Positions 24,338 to 49,308 of a DNA stretch of 49,967 bases are shown here, in pieces; the stretch's first letter is position 1, and each line of letters opens with the position of its first letter. The position numbers were made by a program, and so were the translations under genes. The stretch is from NCBI GenBank assembly GCA_001600695.1, contig BCKQ01000004.1:632089-682055 (forward strand). The letters are read 5' to 3'. This DNA comes from Ascoidea asiatica JCM 7603. Its lineage: Eukaryota > Fungi > Ascomycota. The notes under the pieces were generated by a model. It made no database searches. It saw only the letters and a list, made by a program, of their open reading frames with translations, and was not told the origin of the DNA.

Positions 24338-24702
24338 TTTATTATTAGTTATATTAAAAACAATTTATCTTATGTAATTTTAGTATCTGTAATAAATAAT
24401 TTTAGGTTTAGCAACATTCAGTATTTAAATTCTGCTTTAACGTTAACTGCATCATAATAAAGCAAAATATGGATGCTGGATGTATCTTGCAGAATCTGCT
24501 CACTTCTCAAATGTTCAACAAATTCGAATCTTGATTCGTTTTAATAACCATAGTTTAACAAAATAAAGTATTGCTATGAGCATTCATCGTATTTCTAAAA
24601 CTATTTAAACAGTGTAAAATTGTTTTTTTTTAGCTAATTATTCCAAAACATTAACAATACAATCTTCAATTACACTATATGTAGGGTAGTTTAATAGGAA
24701 AA

Positions 24703-25714: not shown

Positions 25715-26616
25715 ATGCTTTCTGTAAGTATAATTTTTGGATATGCTACATTTTGTTATAACGGAATACTAACTCTATTCTTTAGGACTCTCAAGAACTA
25801 CTAAGGTCAAAATTCAGTAATATAACCGGTGTATCAAAAGCTTCGTCTGTAAATTGGTTAGAAACCTTTGATTGGAATATTGAAAGAACATTGAACGAAT
25901 TCTATGCTGATAATAAGCAAATGCAGAACAGTTCAACAACATTTAAAAGAACATTCAAAACAATTTTTAAACCGAATGAGAAAAGAAAAAAAATGCCTAA
26001 AAATAATACCGCTAAGTTAGAACAAATATATCAAAAATATATGGATCCTGAAAATGAAGAACAGATTAATATTGAAGGAACTATTGAATATATTGAAGCC
26101 TTAGGATTTGACCCAGAGGATAGAAAAGCGTTGATACTCGCTTATCTTCTAGAATCCCCAACAATGGGTCTATTCACCCGAAATTCTTTCATGGAAAAAT
26201 GGAGTGAATATAATGCATTTTCAATATCTGCGATGTCAAAAAAAATAATTGAAGTTGACAGGAAATTCGACGAAGATATTGAGACTCTCAAAATGATTTA
26301 TACTTATACTTTTGGTTTTGTTTTGGAAAAAGATCAAAGGTCAATGGCTCCTGACGTTGCTATAGATTATTGGAAACTATTATTATCGAATCGTTTTCCG
26401 GAGAAAATAAATAGCTGGACGCAGTTTATTGAAACAGTGTGGAAAAAATCAATATCAAGGGATGTTTGGAATATGACTTTAGAATTTATGATAAAATTTG
26501 AAAATGACCAAAAATATGATTCTTGGGATGAAATGGAAGCATGGCCTGGAGTTATAGATGATTTTGTTGCCTATGTAAGACAAAGTATTGCCCCAGAAGA
26601 AGAAGATATTTTTTGA
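25715..26616 (+). CDS. DCN1: NEDD8 E3 Dcn1; spliced, exons 25715-25723 and 25786-26616 (279 aa)
   Basis: ATG CTT TCT|GTAAGT...TACTAAC(25767)...TAG, a 62-nt phase-0 intron. Splicing restores the UBA-like N-terminus ('FSNITGVS...WLETFDWNIE'). PONY domain 'SISRDVWN...AWPGVIDDFV'. Confidence 0.92.
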
Positions 26617-29307: not shown

Positions 29308-29683
29308 AAGCAGTTGACCCAGTTTCAGCAACTGCAACTTTGCGGGCGGACGACTCTTTTCAATGTAAATCTATGATTATTCACATAAATTTATAGAATC
29401 ATATAGTTGCACTATAAATTCTGATTTAAATAAATATTTGAAAGCTCTAAAATGAATTCAGGTGGTAGAAATGCCGAGATCGAAAATAAAATCTCGAAAA
29501 TAAAATTCATCAGATTTATTATAAATGTCTTTTTCTTTTGGGCGCTTAATTTTTTCTTTTTTATTTAAACTTATGAATATTTCTACTATTAGTTATTTAA
29601 TCCTCTGTCAATTACTTATTAGTTACATTAAACTCAAACAAAACTTAACTATATCATTCTAATTTACAAACTTGTTAAGCCAG

Positions 29684-32600
29684 ATGTCGTTTTTTAGAGA
29701 TATTTCCAATGGAAATTCTTTTAAGTCTCGTCAAAATATATTTTCAAGCATAAAAAATTCAGACGCAAAAAATCATTCAATAGAACAAGACGCCTATGAT
29801 GATTCTTCAATGAATGATTCCATAGAAAGTTTAAATGATAATGCCCAAGAATTAGGAAATTTCCCTTTTGAATCTCAAAATCTGTGTGAATTTAATCAAG
29901 TGCATCATAAAGAGAATTTTAGTTCAAGATCAAATTTACTGAAAAAGAACAATACCAATAGCAGATCAAAAAACATTTCAGATTCATCTAGTTGCAATAT
30001 TCAATCATTTACTGATGTTCCATCTAATTCAACATTTTCTTCAGAGATTTCCAAGGCTAAAAGTAATGATTTAATTATTAAAAATGATAAAGAAAATTAT
30101 AAGCATCATAAAATAACAAAGATATCCAGTTCCAGTGGACGGGTTTCAGCCAATTCTGAGAACTCACTAGTTGAAACAGAATTCAATACAAATAATCAAA
30201 ACAAACTAGATAGTAAAATGGATTATTTACCAAAAAGAACTTCAACCCCTAAAATTGTTGGTCCTCAACCATCATATAATTTTTTCAATTATAATAAAGA
30301 AAATCCAGTTAAAGAAAAAAATCTGGACAAAATTCATGCTTATTCCAATAATGACTCTAGAGAAATGAGAAAATCTCAAGGTGATATAGATGTAGATTCG
30401 TCTTTCAATCCTCTCTTTTTATCTGTTACTCATTTACAAAATTCAAAAATTAGGATGGAAGAAAAATTAAAGTCTCTTAACGAAGAATTGACTTTAAAAT
30501 CTAATCAAATAATCTGTTATGAAAAAACTCAAAAAAAAATCAACTCTCAAGTTAACTCTTTTAAAATCACTCTTAAAGATTTAGAAAATACAATTCTTAT
30601 TCTGGAAATCAAAAAAAAAGAATATCAAACAAAATTTGAATCATGCTTTAATGAGTTAAATACTCTTCAAAAAGTATCTGCAGAGATGAAAGTAGATCTA
30701 GAAGAATCAAAATCCCATCTGAACTCATACAATGGGAAGTTTTGTATTTTAAATCAAGAATTGAATTACAGTAAGTATTTTCTTTTTTATTTTCACTTGG
30801 ATACTTTAATTTCTACTTCAATAATACTAACAATGCTGCTTTAGAAACAATAACAATTAACACTTTAAAAGACCAAGTAGATGATATTTCAGGAAGACTG
30901 TCTGAAGAAAAAATGCTATCAGCAGAGTTGGCAAATAAATTAGAATCTGCGAGCAAAATTAACTTCGTATCAATGGAAGAAGAAAAAAAAAATAAATTGA
31001 AGTTTGACAAAGAATTTTTGAATAATCTAGAAGATCTCAGAAAAACAATTGATGAACAGCAAAAGTATTCTACTACTCTTTTATCTATTTTTATTTTTAT
31101 TTTTTCTTAAATCACTTTACTAATAATTTTTAGTTTTCAATCCAAAGAGCTGAACGATCATACAAAACTAATAAAATCTGAAATGGAAGCTCTGGCCACT
31201 AGCGTTGCTAACAAGTAATTATCACTTTCTCATTATTTCTAATAATTTTTTTCAATGGTTTCTGTATAAACTAACAAATTTGAAAAAGTCTTAATATCTC
31301 TGATGAGGCTAAAATGAATAAAACCAAGGAAGTTTCAAACGTTTTTGAATCATTTGTTGTTGAAACAAGGAAAAGTATTGAAGATCATTTGAATTCTATA
31401 AAAGATATTGTTGGAAATATTCAAAAAAGAACTGATCAATTAGAGGACTCTATAAACTCAAAGGAGAAAAATATTGTCGATACTGTAAAATCAGAGACAA
31501 CTATTTTAGGTACTTCTAGTCAAGATATTTTGAGTTCCATTTTATTGAAAATTGAAGGCCTTCAATCATTTTTGGCTGAGGTTAATGAAATGAAAACTTT
31601 AGAAACTACAATATTTGAGCTAAAACGTGAAAATACAGAACTAGTCAATGAACTTTCAAGAATAAAGGGAAGCTACGAGAAATTAGAGGTCAACAATAAA
31701 TCATTAATTTCAGGTATTAATGAATTAAGAAGTAAACTAATTAAAAAAAACTCGGAAAGGGATAACTTAATTGAAAAGGTTCGTCTATAATTTTGTTTTA
31801 GAAACCAAAAACTTAATTGTCTATTTTACTAACCAAATTTTTAGATTGGGTTGCTGGAAAATAATATTGAAATAAGAAAGCAAGAAGAAAAGAATATTGT
31901 TAAAAATAATGAGATTGAGAAGACTTTTCGTGAAAAAGAATTTCAGTGTTATCTTGAAAATGAAAAAGAAAAGGTTTTAGTTCTTAAGAAAGAAAATGAT
32001 AGTGCTGAAGATATTTACAAGAATAAAGTAAGTGTTTTTTCCCAATTTAATTGATGAGCTACAATGATCAAGAATAAAGATACTAATTTTTTTTTTTGTA
32101 AGATCATGGACTTGGAGAAAGCTTTAAAAGAAAGTAAAGCGGAAATTTCAACTTTAAGGGATAGTTTTTCTAAAATAGATGGGAACTCTAGAATCGAATT
32201 CGCTGAGACTTTAAAATCGAATGGAAGTCTTTTGTTCTTGTTGAATGAAAAATGTGATACTCTTGAAAGCAATCTGACAGATAAGGTACGATATTTCCTT
32301 GGATACATGTTTTTATTGACAACCCAATCTCAAATACTAATTTATTTATTTTCTTCAGTTATCTGGGCTAAATGAGATTTTAACATCAAAAGAAGAAACT
32401 TTTCTCAAAAAAGAATTATCTCAAAAGGAATCCGAAAATGAAATAAAAAATATACTACCCAAATATTTTGATTCAATTAAAAAAGAAATTGGTCAAGTTA
32501 AAACAGATTTTAAGCAGTTCAAATCCAAATCTGATACTCAAATGCGTTCTCAAGTAAGCACTTCAAATTCAAATAGTATTTTTCAATAGATAAATCAATG

Positions 32601-33349
32601 TTATTTACTAACAATTTTTACTTTTTGCTGTTGGATAGATTATGAGAATTCAAACATTATTGGATAAAAAAGAAGATGAGATTAGAAAAAAGGATGGGAT
32701 ATTGAATGATGCGATTAATAATAATACTTTTCTCCAAAAAAAAATTGATTCTTTGTCTCAAAAAGTTGTTGAATTCGAGAAGGACAGTAATACTTTGGCA
32801 AAAAAAGTAAGTAGTAATTGGAACTTTAAAATTTTTTCGTTCTTTTGCATAATTTATTAACACAAAACATTGAATCCAAAGGTTGAAGATAATGTTCCCG
32901 AATTAAAGTCAAAGAGCAAAAGATTTGCTTTTGAATCAAAAGTCACTTTTGCAAATCCCGAAACAAATACCACCGCTGAAACGCTTACCACAAATAACAA
33001 AGAAAAAAAAAATGTAAGTTTTTCCCCACATTCATTAACTGTGTGATCTTTTTTTTATATTTATTTTTGATCAATTACACTAACCTTCCATAATTATCAG
33101 AACTTACTGTTATTGCCTATGAACTATGGTAATTCTAAATTGAGAAGTAAAACTGAAACAAAAGAATCAAGAACTAAGCGTGTAGCAACCTTTTCAACTT
33201 ATGAAGCTCAACAAAGTCAAACCTTTTCAAAAAGAAGGGTGCTAATAGATTCTGAAGAGTTGTTTGATGCTTCAGAAAATGATGATTCTTTAGTGAAAGC
33301 TTTCAGTGCAAAGACGAAAAAATACGGAAAAAGAAAAAAGCTTTTGTAA
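29684..33349 (+). CDS. ZIP1: Synaptonemal complex transverse filament protein Zip1; 10 exons, 995 aa. Exons 29684-30770, 30845-31064, 31134-31214, 31289-31778, 31845-32027, 32103-32285, 32359-32553, 32639-32806, 32882-33013, 33101-33349
   Basis: N-terminus 'MSFFRDISNGNSFKSRQNIFS' resembles recalled S. cerevisiae Zip1 '[20 protein letters not shown]'. Also 'DDISGRLSEEK' (cf. 'DDCSGQLSEEK'), a long coiled coil and a basic C-terminus. Nine GT..branch..AG introns of 66-87 nt join all fragments in frame (2988 nt). Confidence 0.85.
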
Positions 33350-33722: not shown

Positions 33723-34021
33723 AGTAAATTAGAGAAAAACGAAGGAAACGAGCACTTTTTGCTAATTAAACGGGTAATGCGGAAATAACACTCTATTAGG
33801 AAATAATGTGCCATAAAACTTGCATGCCGCTGATTTCACAGTGGCAGTGCGATACCGGCTTTATTTCAATATTTCCGCAATGGAAAACCACTCTACGGAA
33901 GCTAAAATTAATGGCGGAAAATGTTTTTGAGTCCAAAAAAATCTAAAATTTATCATTTTTCCGTAAAAATCCGGTTTTAATAGCAAAAAAGTGCTCGTTT
34001 CCTTAATTTTTCTCATTTACT
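33723..34021. repeat. Imperfect ~60-bp inverted repeat pair bounding a ~300-bp element (MITE-like or structured ncRNA)
   Basis: AAGGAAACGAGCACTTTTT (33742-33760) is the exact reverse complement of AAAAAGTGCTCGTTTCCTT (33986-34004); similarity extends on both sides. Confidence 0.8.
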
Positions 34022-35484: not shown

Positions 35485-37341
35485 TTAAAAATTGAAAGAA
35501 CCAGGTAGTGAAGCTTTTTTAAAGGAATCGGCATTATTCATAGTATTATATCTTGTTTTCAGTTTACTTGGAATGGATTTTTGATTTTTTCCTAAAGATT
35601 TATTTGGATGATTGTAATTTTGTGGAATTAAAGCAATGATTGGATTTACCTGCTCTGAAGTCGCATCAAATGTTTTTGGAGCTCTTGAATCATTTTTAGA
35701 AAAATCAAGTGAATTTTTTATTGTTGGTAAAGTACTAACAAACGTACGTCCGCCATCAATTTCCCTTAACCATCTTAAACAACAAAAGTTAAAATTAATA
35801 AAAAATGTTAGTTTGTAAATGGCTATCAATAATTTTTTTTTAAAGATATTTGATAATATATAAGTGTTTTAAATATACATACTTGAAAGTTTCTGGATAC
35901 TTCAAAGATATAAAATTGTAAATATTTTGAGATATTTTTCTAACTTCAGGATCATTTTTGATCCAATATCCATGTTGAATTAATCTTTTTACTTCACCTG
36001 TTTTTTCAGATAGATAATCATTCATACAACAATTTGAATGTTGAGTGATTAAAACTTGAAGAAGAGAATAAAATAATCTGTAAGAAAACGCTCTTTCTGT
36101 ATATTCAACAGCTTGAGATAATATAGGAATAAAACTAATATAATCATTACAAAATGAGTTATGAGTAATGAAAGATAGTAAAGTTATAATTTTTGTTTCT
36201 AAAACTTGTAAAGAATCATAAGACATTCTACCAGCAGCATAAATGCCTAATTCTAAATTACATAAATAACGAAATAAAACATGATGAGGCTGTATTGTTG
36301 GATTTGCAATTTTCCAATCTTTAAAAACATTTAAAACTTTCAATCTGTTTTTAGGAAAAAAAGTCCAATGAGACCAAATATATTGAAGAATCATTTCTAT
36401 TAAAACCTGAGAAACAATAGTATTTGATTCATTTAAAAGATCAAAAATAACACCAGTGTCAATGATTTGTTCCATTAAATCATTAAACGCAGGTAGATAA
36501 ACATTAGCATTTTCAAAATTTGAATTATTTGCACCAATTGCTAGTAACCTAATAACCGCAATTTTTTTTGTTATGAAATCATTAATTGATGGTCTTGGTA
36601 TAAATTCATTCAATAAAGATAAATTAATTTCATTAATTGTTCTTTCAGCTTTCCAAGCAGTTATAAAATTCATTGAAGTAATAATTAATGATAATTTAGT
36701 TGCAGCTTTACATTGATCAATCGAAGTTCCATTAGTAATATTTGACATCTGACTATGATTATTACTTAAGCTATTAGCTTTTTCTTTTAAAGGTAAATTT
36801 TGTTTAAAAATAAATAGTTCTTCAACAGAATAAGTGATTTTCCTTTTTTTATGTTTTCTTTTTATTTTCTGAGTTGAATTTTCATCTAATATAATAGAAC
36901 CTAATGGAATATTATCATAATTTTCACTATCGCTATAATTATAATTATAATTATCATTACTATTATGCTTATTATTGCTATTACTATTGCTATTACTATT
37001 CTTATTATCATATTCTAAATTTAAATTTGTAGAATTAACCGATTGAGCATCAGAAAGAGAATCACGTAAAGAGCCAGTGCGAAGTATTTTCAATTGTTCA
37101 ATTTTATTTTGATTGAAAATAGCAGAATGAGCAGCAGAATTAGATATTAAAGCTGAATTTTCTGTATTTGTTTTTGTTTGTTGATTATATTCATTTAAAA
37201 GAGTGTGAATTGGAAAATAAGAATCATTTGAATTAAAAAATTCATAATTCTGACTTTGAGATTCTGTTGAATTTAAATTTTTGATATTTTTATTATTTAA
37301 TTTAACAAACTTCAAAGGTTCTAGGTTTTCATTATCATGCC

Positions 37342-37396
<55 letters not shown>

Positions 37397-37984
37397 GCCA
37401 TTAAAAGGTGGATAAGCTTTAGAAGCACCAAATTCCATTGTTTGAGGAAGAGAACCGGCATTTCTTTTATCTGATTGATTTGAAAGAGTTATTGCAGAAT
37501 TAGAACTCCAAGAACTTCCAAGTCTATTATCATTTGTTGCTTCAGCTTTTTTTCTATCATTCACCGAACAAAAATATTCTCTGATTGTAAAAATTATTGC
37601 AGAAAGTAAAATTACAAAAAAAATCATTAAACCAAATATAGACAAAGCATCAAATAAAGGCTGATATTGAGATTCTTGGTTTTTATGTATTAATAAATGT
37701 CTTGTTCTATCTTCAAAATAAGCTTGATGATATAAATCTGAATTAACACCAGGAATATTTCTTTTTTTCAAATAATTTAACGATGCACCTTTATTTAAAT
37801 TTATATTATAATCATCCTTGAATTGAATAAACTGATTCAGGTAATTATTATTATCATTGTTAATATTATTATTAATGTTTCTTTTATTTAAATTAGAATT
37901 TGTACCAAAAAAGGAATATTCATTTTCTAGTTGGCGTTTAAGCGCTTGTTGAATTTTATTTTGATTCAATGAAAATTTATTCAT
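35485..37984 (-). CDS. Uncharacterised single-TM protein with Asn-rich linker and helical-repeat C-domain; spliced, exons 37984-35883 and 35773-35485 (~796 aa)
   Basis: 714-codon ORF. GTATGT at 35882, AACTAAC branch and TAAG acceptor at 35774 (109-nt phase-2 intron) join it in frame to the 35485..35829 ORF. Confidence 0.75.
37343..37396. repeat. (TTA/AAT)n microsatellite encoding poly-Asn
   Basis: About 18 tandem ATT units within the minus-strand CDS. Confidence 0.9.
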
Positions 37985-39647: not shown

Positions 39648-40703
39648 ATGAGAAGTTCAGTATTATTTTATTATTCATTGATAATTTTATCATCAATGAA
39701 AATTGAAGCTTCATATATTCCAACATTTTTTAAAAGAAGTGAAAATAAATTAATCTCCCTGGAAGATTTAGTACCTGCAAATGTTGTCAAAAGAGATGCT
39801 AATAAAGTTTCATTAAATGATTTAGTGCCTGTTAATGTTGTGAAAAGAAATGCAATCTTACTTTCTCTGGATGATTTAGTACCTGCAAATATTTTCAAAA
39901 GGGATACAATATATACAACAAGTGTTGAACAAGCAGTTTCTCAAATTGGCGATGGACAAATTCAAGCTGCCACTTCAACTTCAACTTTATCAGCTGTTGT
40001 AACACAGATTGGTGATGGTCAAATTCAAGCTCCAACTTCAACTTCAACTACTTCTTCAAAATCCACTTCCACTGTTACTCCAGTAAGTCAAATTAGTGAT
40101 GGTCAAATCCAAGGTACTTTAACAGTTACTGATTTAACAACTGAAACTTCATTAACGGTTGTTACTATAGTTTCTGATGGTTCTCTTATTCTTTCAACTG
40201 TTGATGCATCAACTTCTGATTCTGAATCATCTACTGCTTCTGAGAAAACTACAGCTTCATCTTTTTATTTTTCAATTATTGAAACTGGAACCGGAACTGA
40301 AACCGAAACCTCTGATATTCTTACTGGTACTAGTAGTGATATATTATCTGGTGAATCTACTACTGAAACTGGAGCTTCTGATATTTTAGGCTCTGAAATT
40401 TTATCTTCTGGTACTTCATCTTTAACAACTGATTACACTCTTACTACAATGCTTATTACTTCAACCGATATTTCCGGTAGTATAGTAACATCAACTACAT
40501 CAGCTTTACTTTCCACAAATACTGCTGGTCAAACTGTACTTGCTGATGTACCAAGCTCTATATTAGCTGCAGAAAGTTCAACAGCTTCTGAATCAACTAG
40601 TTTTGAATTATCTGTTTTAAGTTCTGGTTTCAACTTACAATATAATCTATTAGCTTTATCTACTTTTATTTTTGTTGTAATCCTTGATTTAGTTATTTTA
40701 TAA
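39648..40703 (+). CDS. Cell-wall protein with PIR repeats, Ser/Thr-rich stalk, probable GPI signal and three N-terminal Kex2-flanked repeats
   Basis: Signal peptide; three repeats each ending in KR; SQIGDGQIQA, TQIGDGQIQA, SQISDGQIQG; hydrophobic C-tail after SSG. No cysteines, so no Pir four-Cys domain. Confidence 0.85.
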   Translation: MRSSVLFYYSLIILSSMKIEASYIPTFFKRSENKLISLEDLVPANVVKRDANKVSLNDLVPVNVVKRNAILLSLDDLVPANIFKRDTIYTTSVEQAVSQIGDGQIQAATSTSTLSAVVTQIGDGQIQAPTSTSTTSSKSTSTVTPVSQISDGQIQGTLTVTDLTTETSLTVVTIVSDGSLILSTVDASTSDSESSTASEKTTASSFYFSIIETGTGTETETSDILTGTSSDILSGESTTETGASDILGSEILSSGTSSLTTDYTLTTMLITSTDISGSIVTSTTSALLSTNTAGQTVLADVPSSILAAESSTASESTSFELSVLSSGFNLQYNLLALSTFIFVVILDLVIL

Positions 40704-43781: not shown

Positions 43782-44217
43782 GATGTACATGAGGTAGAAT
43801 ATTATATCAAAATATTATATATCTGCTTTGTTTATTGTGCATAAATTCTTTTTTTTTAAATCGAAAAAAAAAGATCAAAACCGAATCAATGGTTTTAGGG
43901 GAATTAATTTGAAGGCATAGACCAAAGACCATTCAAAGTTTTTAGATTGGATTTTGAACGAATTTTATATATTAATGTCTCTAATCGAATGGATATCTCA
44001 AAATAAGAAAAAAAAAATTGTCAGTTCTTCCAAGAACATTTAAAAAAACGAAATAGAAAAATAGTTAAAAAAATTGAATAAAAAGTACTGATTTAACCAT
44101 CAAATACAGGGTATTAAATAAAATATAAATAAAGAGCATTTTTTCAAGATTTCCAAAATCTTTCTCAATAGAACAGTTAAAGATATTGTAAAATTATTAA
44201 CCATAAACCAGATTAGA

Positions 44218-47200
44218 TTATTGCCTCAAATCAATAGTTTTATTAGCTTCGTCATCTTCATCGAGAATAACATGATATAGACTATTATTTACTCCACTAA
44301 CACGCTTGGCTAACATTCTTTGTGAAGCAGATGAAAGAGAAGGTTTTCTAGGTTGTTGCTTATTTGAAGATTCAACAAGATTTTGTCTTATTGAATCAAT
44401 TCTACTCAGAAATTGAGGTGGCCCTTGAGCCTTATTATTATTAGCGATCATTGAGGAAAGCTCAATATTACTGCTGATAGAAGTATCGAACGATAGCATA
44501 GAGGAATTGTGTTGATAGTTATGATTTGTATCAAAAATGCTCGAGACGGTAGAACTTCTCATAGAGTCCGTTTGGGTAGGAGAATATTTAATGGTACTCA
44601 AGTTTTCTGTCCCCTGTTTGGTTGAAAAATCAGCAACCGATTTTCCTAATTTAACATTATCTATCCAATCTATTTTTTGCACTGTATTAGAATCTTGCCT
44701 TTGTTTTTCAAGATTATCTAGGTTCAATGAATTTCTTTGAGATTTTTTCGATTTGGCAGTATTGATCCACAAAGCATTCTGCTCTTCATCAGCAAAGGCA
44801 AACCGGTTTTGTCTAGAAGATTGAATATCTTTAATTGTTGAATATTCTTTCGATTTAGCCAAATTTATCCAATCTAAACCTTGTTCTTCATCTCGAAAAG
44901 GAAACATTTTTGCAGGTGACAAACTCCTGCCTCTACTAATCGGTGTTGCTTTTTTAGAATTGGCTAGTTCTATCCATTCAATGTTTTCTTCTTCAAGATC
45001 TCCTTTCTTATTAAAAATATCCAGTATATTGGATAATGACTTTCGTTTGGATTTGAGCCAGTCTGGCTTATCATCAGCAACTGCATTTTTAGGGAGAAGG
45101 TTTACCAAATCCACAACCGATTTTCTTTTATTAACTTTATCAATCCAATCCTTTGGAACGGGTTCCAAGCTTTTAACAACTGTCTTTTTAGGACTATCGA
45201 CCTTATGTAATTTATTGGCAGACTTTTTTAATATATCTTCTACTTCTTCTTCAAAATGTTTTGGATTTATTTTTTGAATTTTTTGTTCAACATTATTACT
45301 GTAAATATCAACACCAATCTTATTGAGCTGCTTGAGTGCCTCTGGATCATCTTCTTTTTCCTTTTCAATAACAGGAGCAGGTTTTAATTCATTTTTTAAT
45401 TGAATTGCTTCTGGGGATTCTTCTAGTGGTTTCTCTATTCTAGAGGCAGGTTTCAATTTATTTATCTTTTGTAAAGCTTCAGGAATACTTTCGTCTCTTA
45501 TCTTGCGAATAGAAGCATGTCTTAAAACATTCACTCTCGTTAATGCTTCTGGAACGGGCTCGATCTTTTTGGGAGAAGGAGGTGCTTTTCTTAATTGGGG
45601 ACTGAATTCAGAGTGAGTTTCCTCAATAACTTTTTTGGGAGATTCTGGACCAGTTTTAACTTTTCTTAATTCTACATTTGGAAATTCGGTCTCATATGAT
45701 AATTTTTCATCTTCATTTTCTATTTTTTTACTCCTTTTAAGAACTGTGGATTTCAAATTAGCAAAATCTATTTCTTTATTTGATGCTCTTTCATTTTCAT
45801 TTTCTAAAATCTTTTCCGACTGTTTTTTTATCTGTGGCCTTATAGAATTAAATTTTCGGATAGGCATTTCATTCTCTTGTAACTCCTTAAGTTCTTTTAA
45901 AGAAGTTATATGCTTTCCGGGAGATCTTTCTAAGGCACTGGTTAACCAATCTTTTTCTTGATCTTCTTGTTCAATCATTTTATTGAAAATTGCAATTTGA
46001 TTTCTTGTAGGACTAAGCTCTCTTTGAGGAGTTCTAGGTTCGTTTTTTTGAGAATCCAATGGAGCCTTATTTATTGCGCTCGATAACCAATCTGCTTCAT
46101 TTTTATTATTTAAGTTTCTTACTCTAGATCGAGTTGGACGATTAGCTGTATTAGTTTTTGGATTTTCATCCACTTCATGTATCTGTGTTAGAATTTTCTT
46201 GGTAGAAGTAACCCAACTTTGCTGACTTATTTGACCATTATTTAAAGACAGAGAATTAGCCTTTTTGAGGGCTGGTGCTTTGGCAGCTGCAGTCGCCGAT
46301 ATAGCATATTCTGATCTTGGCATTGGAACATATTTTTCTCTAGTAGAACTATTTCTAGAAGGTTGCGAAGAATTTGTTCTTTTTAAAGCACTAGTAATAA
46401 AAAAGCCTTTATCTTTTTTTTTAGGTGGTGAGATATTATTACTTAATGTAGAATTTTCTTTGAGCTTCTGTAAATTGCTGATATCTGATACTGGCATAGT
46501 ATTTCGGTTATACATATTTCCTTTGGCTAAAGAATTATCATTTAAAGCACTTGTAATAAAGTTATTTTTGATGTGATTCTTCTTTGGAGGGGAAATCTCT
46601 TCGATACTATAATCATTTTCTTCATCCTTGTCTAGATCTATGACTTCAACCTTAAGTGGCAAATTAGAAGAAGACTTTGATTTTCTTGATTGAAAATCAG
46701 CTTCCCTTTGTTGCTTATTTTGAATGTGGTCGATATAATTGCAATTGATTTTTTTTGGAGAAGTAGCAACAGGAGAAGGGATAGAATTGTCTTTGTTTTT
46801 GAAAATGTTGGTTTTAGAAGATTTGGTTTTATTGATTTTGGGTTGCGGCTTGGCCATATTGTTAGCTCTGACCATAAAATCTGGAGTATCTTCATTCAAG
46901 TATCCCTTATCTTCATATCCTATGAGTCTAGAACTATTCTTCTCCGGTAAAGATGGTTTCACTGAACTATCCAAGAGAATATTATTATATTTTTCTAATA
47001 CGTTTCTTACTTTTGATGATGGAGAAGGAGATCTGATTACTGGAGTTATTGCATTCTTTATTTGGATTTTTTTTGGAGATATACTTCTATCATTATTTTG
47101 AATATTAGCTTTACTATTGGGTACTGTTTGATTTAAATTTCCAACATTATTAATTTTCTCGAAAAACTGACGATTAGGAGAATTGGTATAAAACTCTCGA

Positions 47201-49308
47201 GGAAGAATTTTCTCTGGCCCAAAAGATTTTTTCACTGGAGATTTTGAGTTATTAGATCTAATTTTGTATCTTTCTGTATTTTCAAAAGATCCATTTGAGT
47301 TTCTTAAGATTTGTGCTGTCGTTGTGTTGAATTTATCATTAGGGTTAGACATGGAATTGGTAGTTTTGCTTTCCGAATCAAATCTGTTTGTTCTAATAGG
47401 TTCTCTGCCATTCTTGATATTTAATGGGGCAGTAGAAAACTTTCTTTGGGCTGTAATTAAAAATGGATTAATCTTCTGATTTTGTTGATTAGAAAGTGAG
47501 TTTAATTTATTAATGGATTTCTGATCTAATTTATTTTTCATGATACTGGCAGAAGTTTTTGGAACTTTCAAAATACCAGGTAATTCACTTTTGTTTCTTA
47601 AATTTGTTCTATCAGGACTTATTGAACTTTTTGTGGTGATTCCTGGAATCATACCCAATGCTTCTTTTTCCAACAATTTTTCAGACTTTTCGGAAAGTTT
47701 GGAGATTAAATTCATATGAGACTCTGAGATTGGCAAGGAGTGCTTTTGAAAAGGCTCTTCATTGATATTTTCTTCTAATATGTTATCGGTCTTTGGAATA
47801 TTTTTACGTTGGGGAGATTTCGATAGATTTGCTGATCTTTCAGACATTCTTCGAAGTAAATTCATTGATTCCATTGATATCGAATATTTATCTTTTTTTT
47901 GAGATTTACTTGAATTAGTTTCTTTAATAGTCTCATCATTGGAAGAAATGTTTTTAGGATTTGATTTCTCCTTACGTTCAATTACTTTATTTTGAACTTC
48001 GATTTCACTCTCACTATCAGAATCACAGTCAGAAAGGTTTATTACTTTAATAGCATTTGGATTAAATTGTTTTTTTGGCTTTTGCTTGGAATTGGTAGTT
48101 AATTCAGGATGAATTTTAACCGAGTGTGTTCTTTTGAACTCCAAAAAATCTTCATAACTAAAAACTGGATCATTATCATTTTTTGATTTAGAAATACTTT
48201 TAATCTTATCTAATGAGGGTTGTTGTAAATTTGTTCGTTGTTTTGATGTATGCTTATCTCCATCGCCTATAAACTGATTAGTTATATCTGACAATATTTT
48301 TTGTTCATTATTTGAATTTCTATATGATAAAATATTAGAAGCTTGATTGGAATTATTCGAATTTGAAGATTGTGGAATTTGAGAAAAATCAGATTCAAAT
48401 ATGTAAGGAGCATCTAAAGAATTAGGAAGTACTTTGCTCACTTGCTTGATAGGGGAGTTATCTTGTAATTGAGGATTAGGAGATTTATATTTTTCTCGTA
48501 ATGCTTCAATTTTATCATAATTATAAGCAGATTGAAATTTAAGTGGACTATTAAAAAAATCATAGTCATCTTTTGACTTATTGGGGACAGGGTTTTCAAT
48601 TTCATTCTCTTTATCACAAAAACTTATGGGTGATGTTCCAATAGATGTATAATGTTTCATTTTTTGAACCGACTGTAAAAAAGCGTTATGATCATGTTGT
48701 GCTGATGAATTAGTAATTTGGGGAAGTTCTCTATCCTCATATATTTGCTTTCCTGGAGATAAACGTTTAGCTATGGGACTAAGTAAATTTAGAAAATTAT
48801 CGTTTGTTTCATTAAATTCATCAATATCTCCAGAAACGATTCTTGAGTTAAATGGGGAAACATAGTTTTTAGCATAAATTTCTTTAGATCTTTGAATTGA
48901 AGTTGTGTTATTTGAGTTGATATTATCAGAAGTATTGGAGGAAATGAGACCATTTTGATCTTGTTGTTGATTTTTATCTTGATTTTTACTCCCATCGGTT
49001 TTAGAATTTATTTTGTTTGTGTTATTTTTGAGTAAAGATTTTTTGTAAGCATTAAACTCCAAGTTTAAAGAATGAACAGAATCAGCAATAGACGTATCAG
49101 AATCATTTTCATGGCCATCATAATTTTCTTTTGGATTAAAAATACTAAAATCATTGAATTCTCCAGCTGATCTTCTTTTTCTAATTTCTTCTTCTAATGC
49201 TCTTGTTATCATCTCATCTTCATGAGCTCTTTTTACATCTAATTCATGAAGCCTCTGAAGAAAATCATTTATATCATTAGATTTATAGAGATTATCATCA
49301 ATGTTCAT
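44218..49308 (-). CDS. BSP1: Long disordered Bsp1-like (DUF4045) actin/endocytic adaptor
   Basis: N-terminal 'INDFLQRLHELDVKRAHEDE...LEEEI' (DUF4045-like), 'FQSAYNY' (cf. recalled Bsp1 'YRSAYNY'), KPSLP proline motif, repeated PEAL and DWLxSA motifs. Confidence 0.65.
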   Translation of the reverse strand: MNIDDNLYKSNDINDFLQRLHELDVKRAHEDEMITRALEEEIRKRRSAGEFNDFSIFNPKENYDGHENDSDTSIADSVHSLNLEFNAYKKSLLKNNTNKINSKTDGSKNQDKNQQQDQNGLISSNTSDNINSNNTTSIQRSKEIYAKNYVSPFNSRIVSGDIDEFNETNDNFLNLLSPIAKRLSPGKQIYEDRELPQITNSSAQHDHNAFLQSVQKMKHYTSIGTSPISFCDKENEIENPVPNKSKDDYDFFNSPLKFQSAYNYDKIEALREKYKSPNPQLQDNSPIKQVSKVLPNSLDAPYIFESDFSQIPQSSNSNNSNQASNILSYRNSNNEQKILSDITNQFIGDGDKHTSKQRTNLQQPSLDKIKSISKSKNDNDPVFSYEDFLEFKRTHSVKIHPELTTNSKQKPKKQFNPNAIKVINLSDCDSDSESEIEVQNKVIERKEKSNPKNISSNDETIKETNSSKSQKKDKYSISMESMNLLRRMSERSANLSKSPQRKNIPKTDNILEENINEEPFQKHSLPISESHMNLISKLSEKSEKLLEKEALGMIPGITTKSSISPDRTNLRNKSELPGILKVPKTSASIMKNKLDQKSINKLNSLSNQQNQKINPFLITAQRKFSTAPLNIKNGREPIRTNRFDSESKTTNSMSNPNDKFNTTTAQILRNSNGSFENTERYKIRSNNSKSPVKKSFGPEKILPREFYTNSPNRQFFEKINNVGNLNQTVPNSKANIQNNDRSISPKKIQIKNAITPVIRSPSPSSKVRNVLEKYNNILLDSSVKPSLPEKNSSRLIGYEDKGYLNEDTPDFMVRANNMAKPQPKINKTKSSKTNIFKNKDNSIPSPVATSPKKINCNYIDHIQNKQQREADFQSRKSKSSSNLPLKVEVIDLDKDEENDYSIEEISPPKKNHIKNNFITSALNDNSLAKGNMYNRNTMPVSDISNLQKLKENSTLSNNISPPKKKDKGFFITSALKRTNSSQPSRNSSTREKYVPMPRSEYAISATAAAKAPALKKANSLSLNNGQISQQSWVTSTKKILTQIHEVDENPKTNTANRPTRSRVRNLNNKNEADWLSSAINKAPLDSQKNEPRTPQRELSPTRNQIAIFNKMIEQEDQEKDWLTSALERSPGKHITSLKELKELQENEMPIRKFNSIRPQIKKQSEKILENENERASNKEIDFANLKSTVLKRSKKIENEDEKLSYETEFPNVELRKVKTGPESPKKVIEETHSEFSPQLRKAPPSPKKIEPVPEALTRVNVLRHASIRKIRDESIPEALQKINKLKPASRIEKPLEESPEAIQLKNELKPAPVIEKEKEDDPEALKQLNKIGVDIYSNNVEQKIQKINPKHFEEEVEDILKKSANKLHKVDSPKKTVVKSLEPVPKDWIDKVNKRKSVVDLVNLLPKNAVADDKPDWLKSKRKSLSNILDIFNKKGDLEEENIEWIELANSKKATPISRGRSLSPAKMFPFRDEEQGLDWINLAKSKEYSTIKDIQSSRQNRFAFADEEQNALWINTAKSKKSQRNSLNLDNLEKQRQDSNTVQKIDWIDNVKLGKSVADFSTKQGTENLSTIKYSPTQTDSMRSSTVSSIFDTNHNYQHNSSMLSFDTSISSNIELSSMIANNNKAQGPPQFLSRIDSIRQNLVESSNKQQPRKPSLSSASQRMLAKRVSGVNNSLYHVILDEDDEANKTIDLRQ

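Follow-up and report, generated by a model that had tools for sequence, protein, structure and literature searches.

A probable ZIP1 orthologue with nine predicted introns in the budding yeast Ascoidea asiatica

How could a meiotic gene of a budding yeast come to carry nine introns, when ZIP1 is intronless in S. cerevisiae and Saccharomycodes ludwigii and has a single intron in some post-duplication genera? The question is raised by a locus on the forward strand of Ascoidea asiatica JCM7603, positions 29684-33349 of the 49,967-nt stretch of DNA analysed here (the window), which comes from an assembly of 20,313,720 bases in 71 contigs (PMC5499181).

Splice structure and identity of the locus

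At the DNA level the locus resolves into ten exons and nine GT-AG introns of 66-87 nt (Table 1). The initial annotation had given the same intron coordinates, and these held throughout, with GT at the start, AG at the end and the branch motifs that it had named; its count of about eight ORF fragments has to be raised to ten exons. The exons sum to 2988 nt, i.e. 995 codons and a stop, with no internal stop, and in silico joining reproduced the uninterrupted 995-aa frame claimed before (the joined model was translated only for this frame check; homology searches were run exon by exon). In all nine introns a branch motif lies 11-28 nt upstream of the intron end, and the acceptor is the first AG past that motif. 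Any single intron left in place brings a premature stop, inside the intron or just past it; this is also true of the five introns with length divisible by three. The introns contain 46% T and 31% A, the exons 29% T and 43% A.

Table 1. Features of the ZIP1 locus in window coordinates
Feature	Positions	Strand	Description
Motif GGCGCTTAAT	29541..29550	+	143 nt before ATG; resembles URS1 minus one base
Exon 1	29684..30770	+	aa 1-362; Zip1 N-terminal tip FFRD...FKxRxNIF, low-complexity head, coiled-coil start near aa 240
Intron 1	30771..30844	+	74 nt, phase 1, donor GTAAGT, branch TACTAAC, TAG; profile match in register across
Exon 2	30845..31064	+	conserved Zip1 block GxLSEEK at 30892-30912
Intron 2	31065..31133	+	69 nt, phase 2, non-consensus donor GTATTC
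Exon 3	31134..31214	+	81 nt; alone without significant profile match
Intron 3	31215..31288	+	74 nt, phase 2, donor GTAATT; position probably common with Saccharomycetaceae ZIP1
Exon 4	31289..31778	+	coiled coil; weak collinear profile match 391-531, sub-threshold coiled-coil Pfam matches
Intron 4	31779..31844	+	66 nt, phase 0, non-consensus donor GTTCGT
Exon 5	31845..32027	+	183 nt, coiled coil (heptad score)
Intron 5	32028..32102	+	75 nt, phase 0, donor GTAAGT
Exon 6	32103..32285	+	183 nt, coiled coil (heptad score)
Intron 6	32286..32358	+	73 nt, phase 0, donor GTACGA
Exon 7	32359..32553	+	195 nt, coiled coil (heptad score)
Intron 7	32554..32638	+	85 nt, phase 0, donor GTAAGC
Exon 8	32639..32806	+	168 nt, coiled-coil end (heptad score)
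Intron 8	32807..32881	+	75 nt, phase 0, donor GTAAGT, weak branch TATTAAC
Exon 9	32882..33013	+	132 nt, non-coiled-coil tail (heptad score)
Intron 9	33014..33100	+	87 nt, phase 0, donor GTAAGT, branch CACTAAC
Exon 10	33101..33349	+	basic/acidic tail, ends RKKLL + stop codon

A relaxed scan for intron patterns, blind to the earlier coordinates, recovered all nine acceptors, with nine matches in 3.7 kb; two of the acceptors were paired with an alternative upstream donor. Shuffling the region 500 times gave a mean of 2.3 relaxed matches and a maximum of 7, compared with the real 9. The strict donor-plus-branch consensus fits two of the nine introns and seven deviate from it. A tenth intron, starting from GTAATT and spanning the stop codon, was considered and rejected, as a branch motif is absent downstream. 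Introns 4-9 (31779-33100) are all in phase 0, and skipping of exons 5-9 would preserve the frame.

Two profile matches bear out the earlier naming of the product as Zip1. A profile of the Zip1 N-terminus (first 45 residues, built from 47 orthologues) matched significantly at a single place in the genome, the start of exon 1 (E 2.5e-5; the next match had E 1.17). Both tip motifs are present, with two additional residues between the halves and a Ser where Pro is usual, as in protein P0151. The tip keeps equivalents of F4, F5, R6, D7, I18 and F19, residues at which mutation affects crossing over or synapsis (PMC6605668) and which have been proposed as Zip3 contacts (PMC12667828). The second match is the conserved exon 2 block LKxELDDxSGQLSEEK, at profile positions 280-343 (E 3e-5, local search against 8231 background frames). 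In a local search with the full profile the end of exon 1 (aa 272-349) corresponded to positions 185-262, and the exon 1 and exon 2 matches are in register after removal of intron 1. The heptad score, computed exon by exon, indicated an unstructured head to ∼aa 240, coiled coil to ∼aa 870 (∼630 aa) and then a tail.

A profile check against Zip1 orthologues had been proposed for the whole product; it was positive for exons 1 and 2, and exons 3 and 5-10 gave no significant Zip1 match individually. The stretch aa 239-262 resembles the SSNDVLLEAF block, in register by eye; the block profile gave no score there. The terminal RKKLL was compared with the Zip1 C-terminal motifs DEFDLS/RKKLLL, and the C-terminal profile match was not significant (E 0.18). 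In genome-wide searches neither S. cerevisiae Zip1 alone nor the full-length profile had a match, and exon 1 searched against protein collections, PDB, Pfam and the ESM Atlas returned nothing specific (the length window of one protein-collection search excluded full-length Zip1).

The upstream gene, SWD3, has its best named relative in Saccharomycopsis. Its best match, at 69% identity, is on metagenome contig L003, where the next same-strand gene begins with the same N-terminal motif and matches the exon 1 product in pairwise comparison (E 6e-9); the contig probably belongs to another Ascoidea-like yeast. A DNA pattern derived from the N-terminus of the L003 orthologue picked out a single locus of the metagenome collection, which is S. 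cerevisiae ZIP1 with GCN2 and DPP1 next to it. This pattern allowed one extra codon, modelled on S. cerevisiae Zip1, so that the test is partly circular; the N-terminal profile test is not.

The neighbours of ZIP1 are SWD3 and a cation-efflux gene here, whereas they are DPP1 and INM2 in Saccharomycetaceae. The synteny of Saccharomycetaceae ZIP1 (DPP1, INM2, NSE3) is not kept, and the gene order is common only to L003; conservation of that synteny is not expected at such distance and is not defining. Linkage of SWD3 and ZIP1 was absent in Saccharomycopsis crataegensis, Pachysolen, Cyberlindnera and one Logan contig, and therefore no ZIP1 orthologue was obtained outside Ascoidea and Saccharomycetales.

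Compared with S. cerevisiae ZIP1 (YDR285W) and the other Saccharomycetaceae orthologues, the locus is alike in the tip motif, the GxLSEEK block, the succession of head, coiled coil and tail, and the single copy; it differs in the length of the protein, 995 aa versus ∼750-960 aa, and the match to the C-terminal motifs falls short of significance. Matches to the Zip1 partner families SPO22 and ECM11 are present in the genome. The locus is a single, intact gene in A. asiatica, and we hold with high confidence that it is the spliced ZIP1 orthologue of this species. Recognisable Zip1, missed by ordinary searches, is by this identification extended to Ascoideales.

Intron richness against the genome background

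Three strict short-intron patterns produced 221 matches in the whole genome, some of them by chance, with ∼14 same-strand pairs and no clear triple. ZIP1 itself yields only two strict matches; thus the strict screen ranks it among the richest genes and cannot show that it is the richest. With the relaxed scan the background was ∼1 match per 3.7 kb of strand (∼340 kb, both strands), and no other 3.7-kb stretch in these ∼340 kb exceeded 6.

Published figures point the same way. Introns are present in 3-5% of Saccharomycetaceae genes and in 10-15% of those of methylotrophs, basal lineages being richer (PMC5499181); the sister genus of Ascoidea has 0.17 introns per gene (PMC13148404). ZIP1 has here ∼3 introns per kb of coding sequence versus 0.04 on average in the conserved genes of the subphylum (PMC8476143). 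Multi-intron genes occur also in the intron-rich basal Saccharomycotina (Lipomyces, Geotrichum, Nadsonia, Tortispora; PMC5499181), but in comparison with these the Ascoidea genome overall looks intron-poor, so that ZIP1 stands out. The description of the gene as exceptionally intron-rich is backed by both comparisons, with the proviso that equally rich genes with weak signals may exist. Its neighbours had been said to carry none or one intron, and in the relaxed scan the other genes of the window did show zero or one candidate.

A literature search, of incomplete coverage, found no published report of these ZIP1 introns. The ZIP1 orthologue is real, probably spliced and exceptional in its gene structure; Zip1, spliceosomal introns and introns in meiotic genes are already known, hence no new mechanism is shown.

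The single intron candidates of the window (24589-24684, 25724-25785, 40083-40170 and 44111-44211) lie in or beside cytochrome b5-like, DCN1-like and PIR genes and near an orphan ORF of 1696 aa. Elsewhere in the genome a family of near-identical short intron-like sequences occupies six sites (G000:C2:2501807, C10:603705, C18:124290, C18:264683, C18:304192 and C20:153007).

Origin of the introns

In four Saccharomycetaceae ZIP1 genes we saw a phase-2 intron signal 82 codons past the G of GxLSEEK, three of them clean and one doubtful. Intron 3 of A. asiatica, also of phase 2, lies 84 codons past the same anchor G; the profile positions of the two introns are 373 versus 374 upstream and 380 versus 380 downstream. 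The gene on contig L047, which has Saccharomycetaceae synteny and the orthologue of which first came as a 487-aa fragment, carries a canonical 94-nt intron at +82 in phase 2; that of Arxiozyma heterogenica an annotated 107-nt intron, again at +82 and in phase 2; that of H. blattae (L049:1623-1706) a clean, unannotated in-frame candidate of 84 nt at +82. In K. africana (L050 from 1440) donor and branch are found at +82, phase 2; the intron is doubtful because only a distant acceptor preserves the frame. The H. naganishii protein P0145 has an intron-like insertion at the site, seen at the protein level only. These observations suggest that translated intron sequence has entered the ZIP1 models of H. 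blattae and H. naganishii, and perhaps that of K. africana. The ZIP1 genes of S. cerevisiae and S. ludwigii have no intron at the site; the earlier statement that ZIP1 is intronless is right for these two species and wrong for Saccharomycetaceae at large, given the introns of the L047 and A. heterogenica genes.

The chance of an intron falling within two codons of one of the nine, and in phase with it, is ∼1.5%. The residues flanking intron 3 aligned in register no better than shuffled ones (p 0.39), and the shared position is deduced from anchor distance, phase and a low-confidence profile alignment. By this comparison of positions intron 3 is probably homologous to the Saccharomycetaceae intron and ancestral. 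Retention and gain had been offered as alternatives for the introns in general; the comparison backs retention for intron 3 only, and gain was not backed.

We lean towards the view that the introns of this gene are mostly retained ancestral ones. The nine short introns would be removed by ordinary spliceosomal splicing, giving an mRNA for the 995-aa protein; this would act as the transverse filament of the synaptonemal complex, with a tip, a coiled coil spanning the complex and an unstructured tail. The tip may engage Zip3 and promote crossovers, as its counterpart in S. cerevisiae does. Transcription would be meiotic, and the introns would be old ones that escaped the loss stripping most yeast genes, presumably because a gene silent in vegetative growth has little exposure to cDNA-mediated loss. 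In Saccharomycetaceae intron loss exceeds gain about a hundredfold, and loss in yeasts is believed to proceed mainly by cDNA recombination, which spares 5′ introns (PMC4202332). The first 1087 nt of ZIP1 in A. asiatica are free of introns and all nine follow, the pattern of a gene hardly touched by cDNA-mediated loss. The match of intron 3 in Saccharomycetaceae, the placement of the introns in the middle and 3′ part, and the existence of other split meiotic genes with unsplit mitotic paralogues make retention the most likely reading.

The split genes include a DMC1-like gene (G000:C4:620756-621892) and an MSH5-like gene (G000:C6:1007208-1009330), each with at least three introns judged from match coordinates, an MSH4-like gene (G000:C7:359260-362100) with three introns read from sequence, and a SPO22-like gene (G000:C6:688646-691493) with at least two breaks. 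Four MutS paralogues, RAD51 and RAD57 are single frames (paralogue names come from family and elimination, not from trees), and ∼40 helicase domains contain one stop interruption in total. The HOP1-, MND1-, ECM11-, MLH2- and MER1-like genes and both kleisins are long open frames; vegetative silence therefore cannot be the whole explanation. MER3 has a frame of 1165 codons. Many introns of the DMC1-, MSH4-, MSH5- and SPO22-like genes lie in the 3′ halves.

Meiotic genes with introns, often with non-consensus signals, are found likewise in S. cerevisiae (DMC1, HOP2, REC107/MER2, HFM1/MER3, SPO22, AMA1). They have one or two introns each, mostly near the 5′ end; ZIP1 of A. asiatica has nine, begins with a long intron-free stretch and, as far as its introns were searched, is free of the Mer1 enhancer. 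We put forward as a tentative idea, which may well prove wrong, that in budding yeasts genes for crossing over and synapsis are a refuge of ancestral introns, Ascoidea ZIP1 standing near the ancestral exon structure, DMC1, MSH4, MSH5 and SPO22 keeping it partly, and one ZIP1 intron persisting unnoticed in several Saccharomycetaceae because gene models run straight through it.

Retention is compatible with a further, minor possibility: the weak splice signals could multiply into a gate, such that full-length Zip1 would be made only in the presence of a Mer1-type activator or of meiotic splicing capacity, intron retention giving a truncated message. The deviating signals would fit (donors GTATTC, GTAATT, GTTCGT, GTACGA and GTAAGC, branch TATTAAC), among them the GTTCGT donor of intron 4, which we take to be of MER2 type; so would the early stop that follows retention of each intron, and the fact that the shared intron has weak donors in H. 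blattae and K. africana as well. For S. cerevisiae, regulation of splicing in meiosis is established (PMC7969001), and the A. asiatica genome has a KH-domain MER1-like gene, MER1 having been reported for Ascoideaceae (PMC8567612). However, the Mer1 enhancer consensus AYACCCTY was absent from all nine introns with one mismatch allowed, and degenerate donors may be the norm of this species.

That most of the introns were gained within the lineage of Ascoidea, whether inserted at AG|GT-like sites of the Lys/Glu-rich coiled coil or multiplied through tandem duplication of exon and intron together, we regard as unlikely. One could cite for it the uniform intron length, the run of six consecutive phase-0 introns around exons of 183, 183, 195, 168 and 132 nt, and the fact that most Zip1 orthologues retrieved are single open frames. 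The phase-0 run may be explained by AG|GT-like sites in Lys-rich sequence. The nine introns, however, show no similarity to one another (best z 2.9 of 36 pairs), nor do the exons repeat one another (best z 2.2), which argues against recent copying and leaves an origin by tandem duplication or from mobile introns unsupported. Moreover, intron 3 is probably older than the lineage, and intron gains are rare in yeasts (PMC4202332).

It is very doubtful that ZIP1 is ordinary for its genome, one of many multi-intron Ascoidea genes as yet unsampled. Genes like it could hide among the ∼14 same-strand pairs of strict matches, and basal yeasts can be intron-rich (PMC5499181); against this stand the ceiling of 6 relaxed matches elsewhere, the long frames of the helicase domains and of the mitotic MutS and RecA paralogues, and the low intron density of the sister genus (PMC13148404). 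A decayed gene or a chance join of fragments is improbable in the extreme: most exons do lack significant homology individually, but one frame is restored by the first-AG acceptors of all nine introns, the blind scan scored above all 500 shuffles, the profile register is kept across intron 1, the gene is single-copy and its partner genes are present.

If genes for crossing over and synapsis are indeed such a refuge, intron loss would depend on when a gene is expressed, and 'absences' of Zip1 in other yeast clades may partly be failures of annotation. Ascoidea ZIP1 is a concrete case for asking why some yeast genes escape intron loss.

Upstream motif, CTG codons and surroundings

The motif GGCGCTTAAT found before the ATG (Table 1) is present also upstream of the syntenic L003 orthologue. 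The genome holds 38 copies versus 5-10 expected (37 sites besides ZIP1, L004-L039), many of them on the sense strand 120-320 nt before a gene. Among the genes that it precedes are the MSH4-, MLH2- and MER1-like ones together with non-meiotic genes, and it was not found near DMC1-, HOP1-, MSH5-, MND1- and MER3-like genes. A role as a meiosis-specific site is thus unsupported and the motif is no proof of meiotic expression. The canonical URS1/Ume6 site GGCGGCTA is absent upstream of ZIP1 and not enriched genome-wide. GGCGCTTAAT may be an Ascoidea promoter element, perhaps a changed Ume6 site.

A. asiatica reads CUG ambiguously, and the ZIP1 model contains 11 in-frame CTG codons, which we translated as Leu. 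One of them (30898-30900) encodes the nearly invariant Leu of GxLSEEK, in a lineage with altered CUG decoding; the Ascoidea order reads CUG as serine (PMC13148404).

Two long ORFs of the window, 44218-49308 (1696 aa) and 35840-37984 (714 aa), had no Pfam match above threshold. Downstream of ZIP1, at 33732-34014, there is a fold-back element with 39-nt arms, 85% complementary and 205 nt apart.
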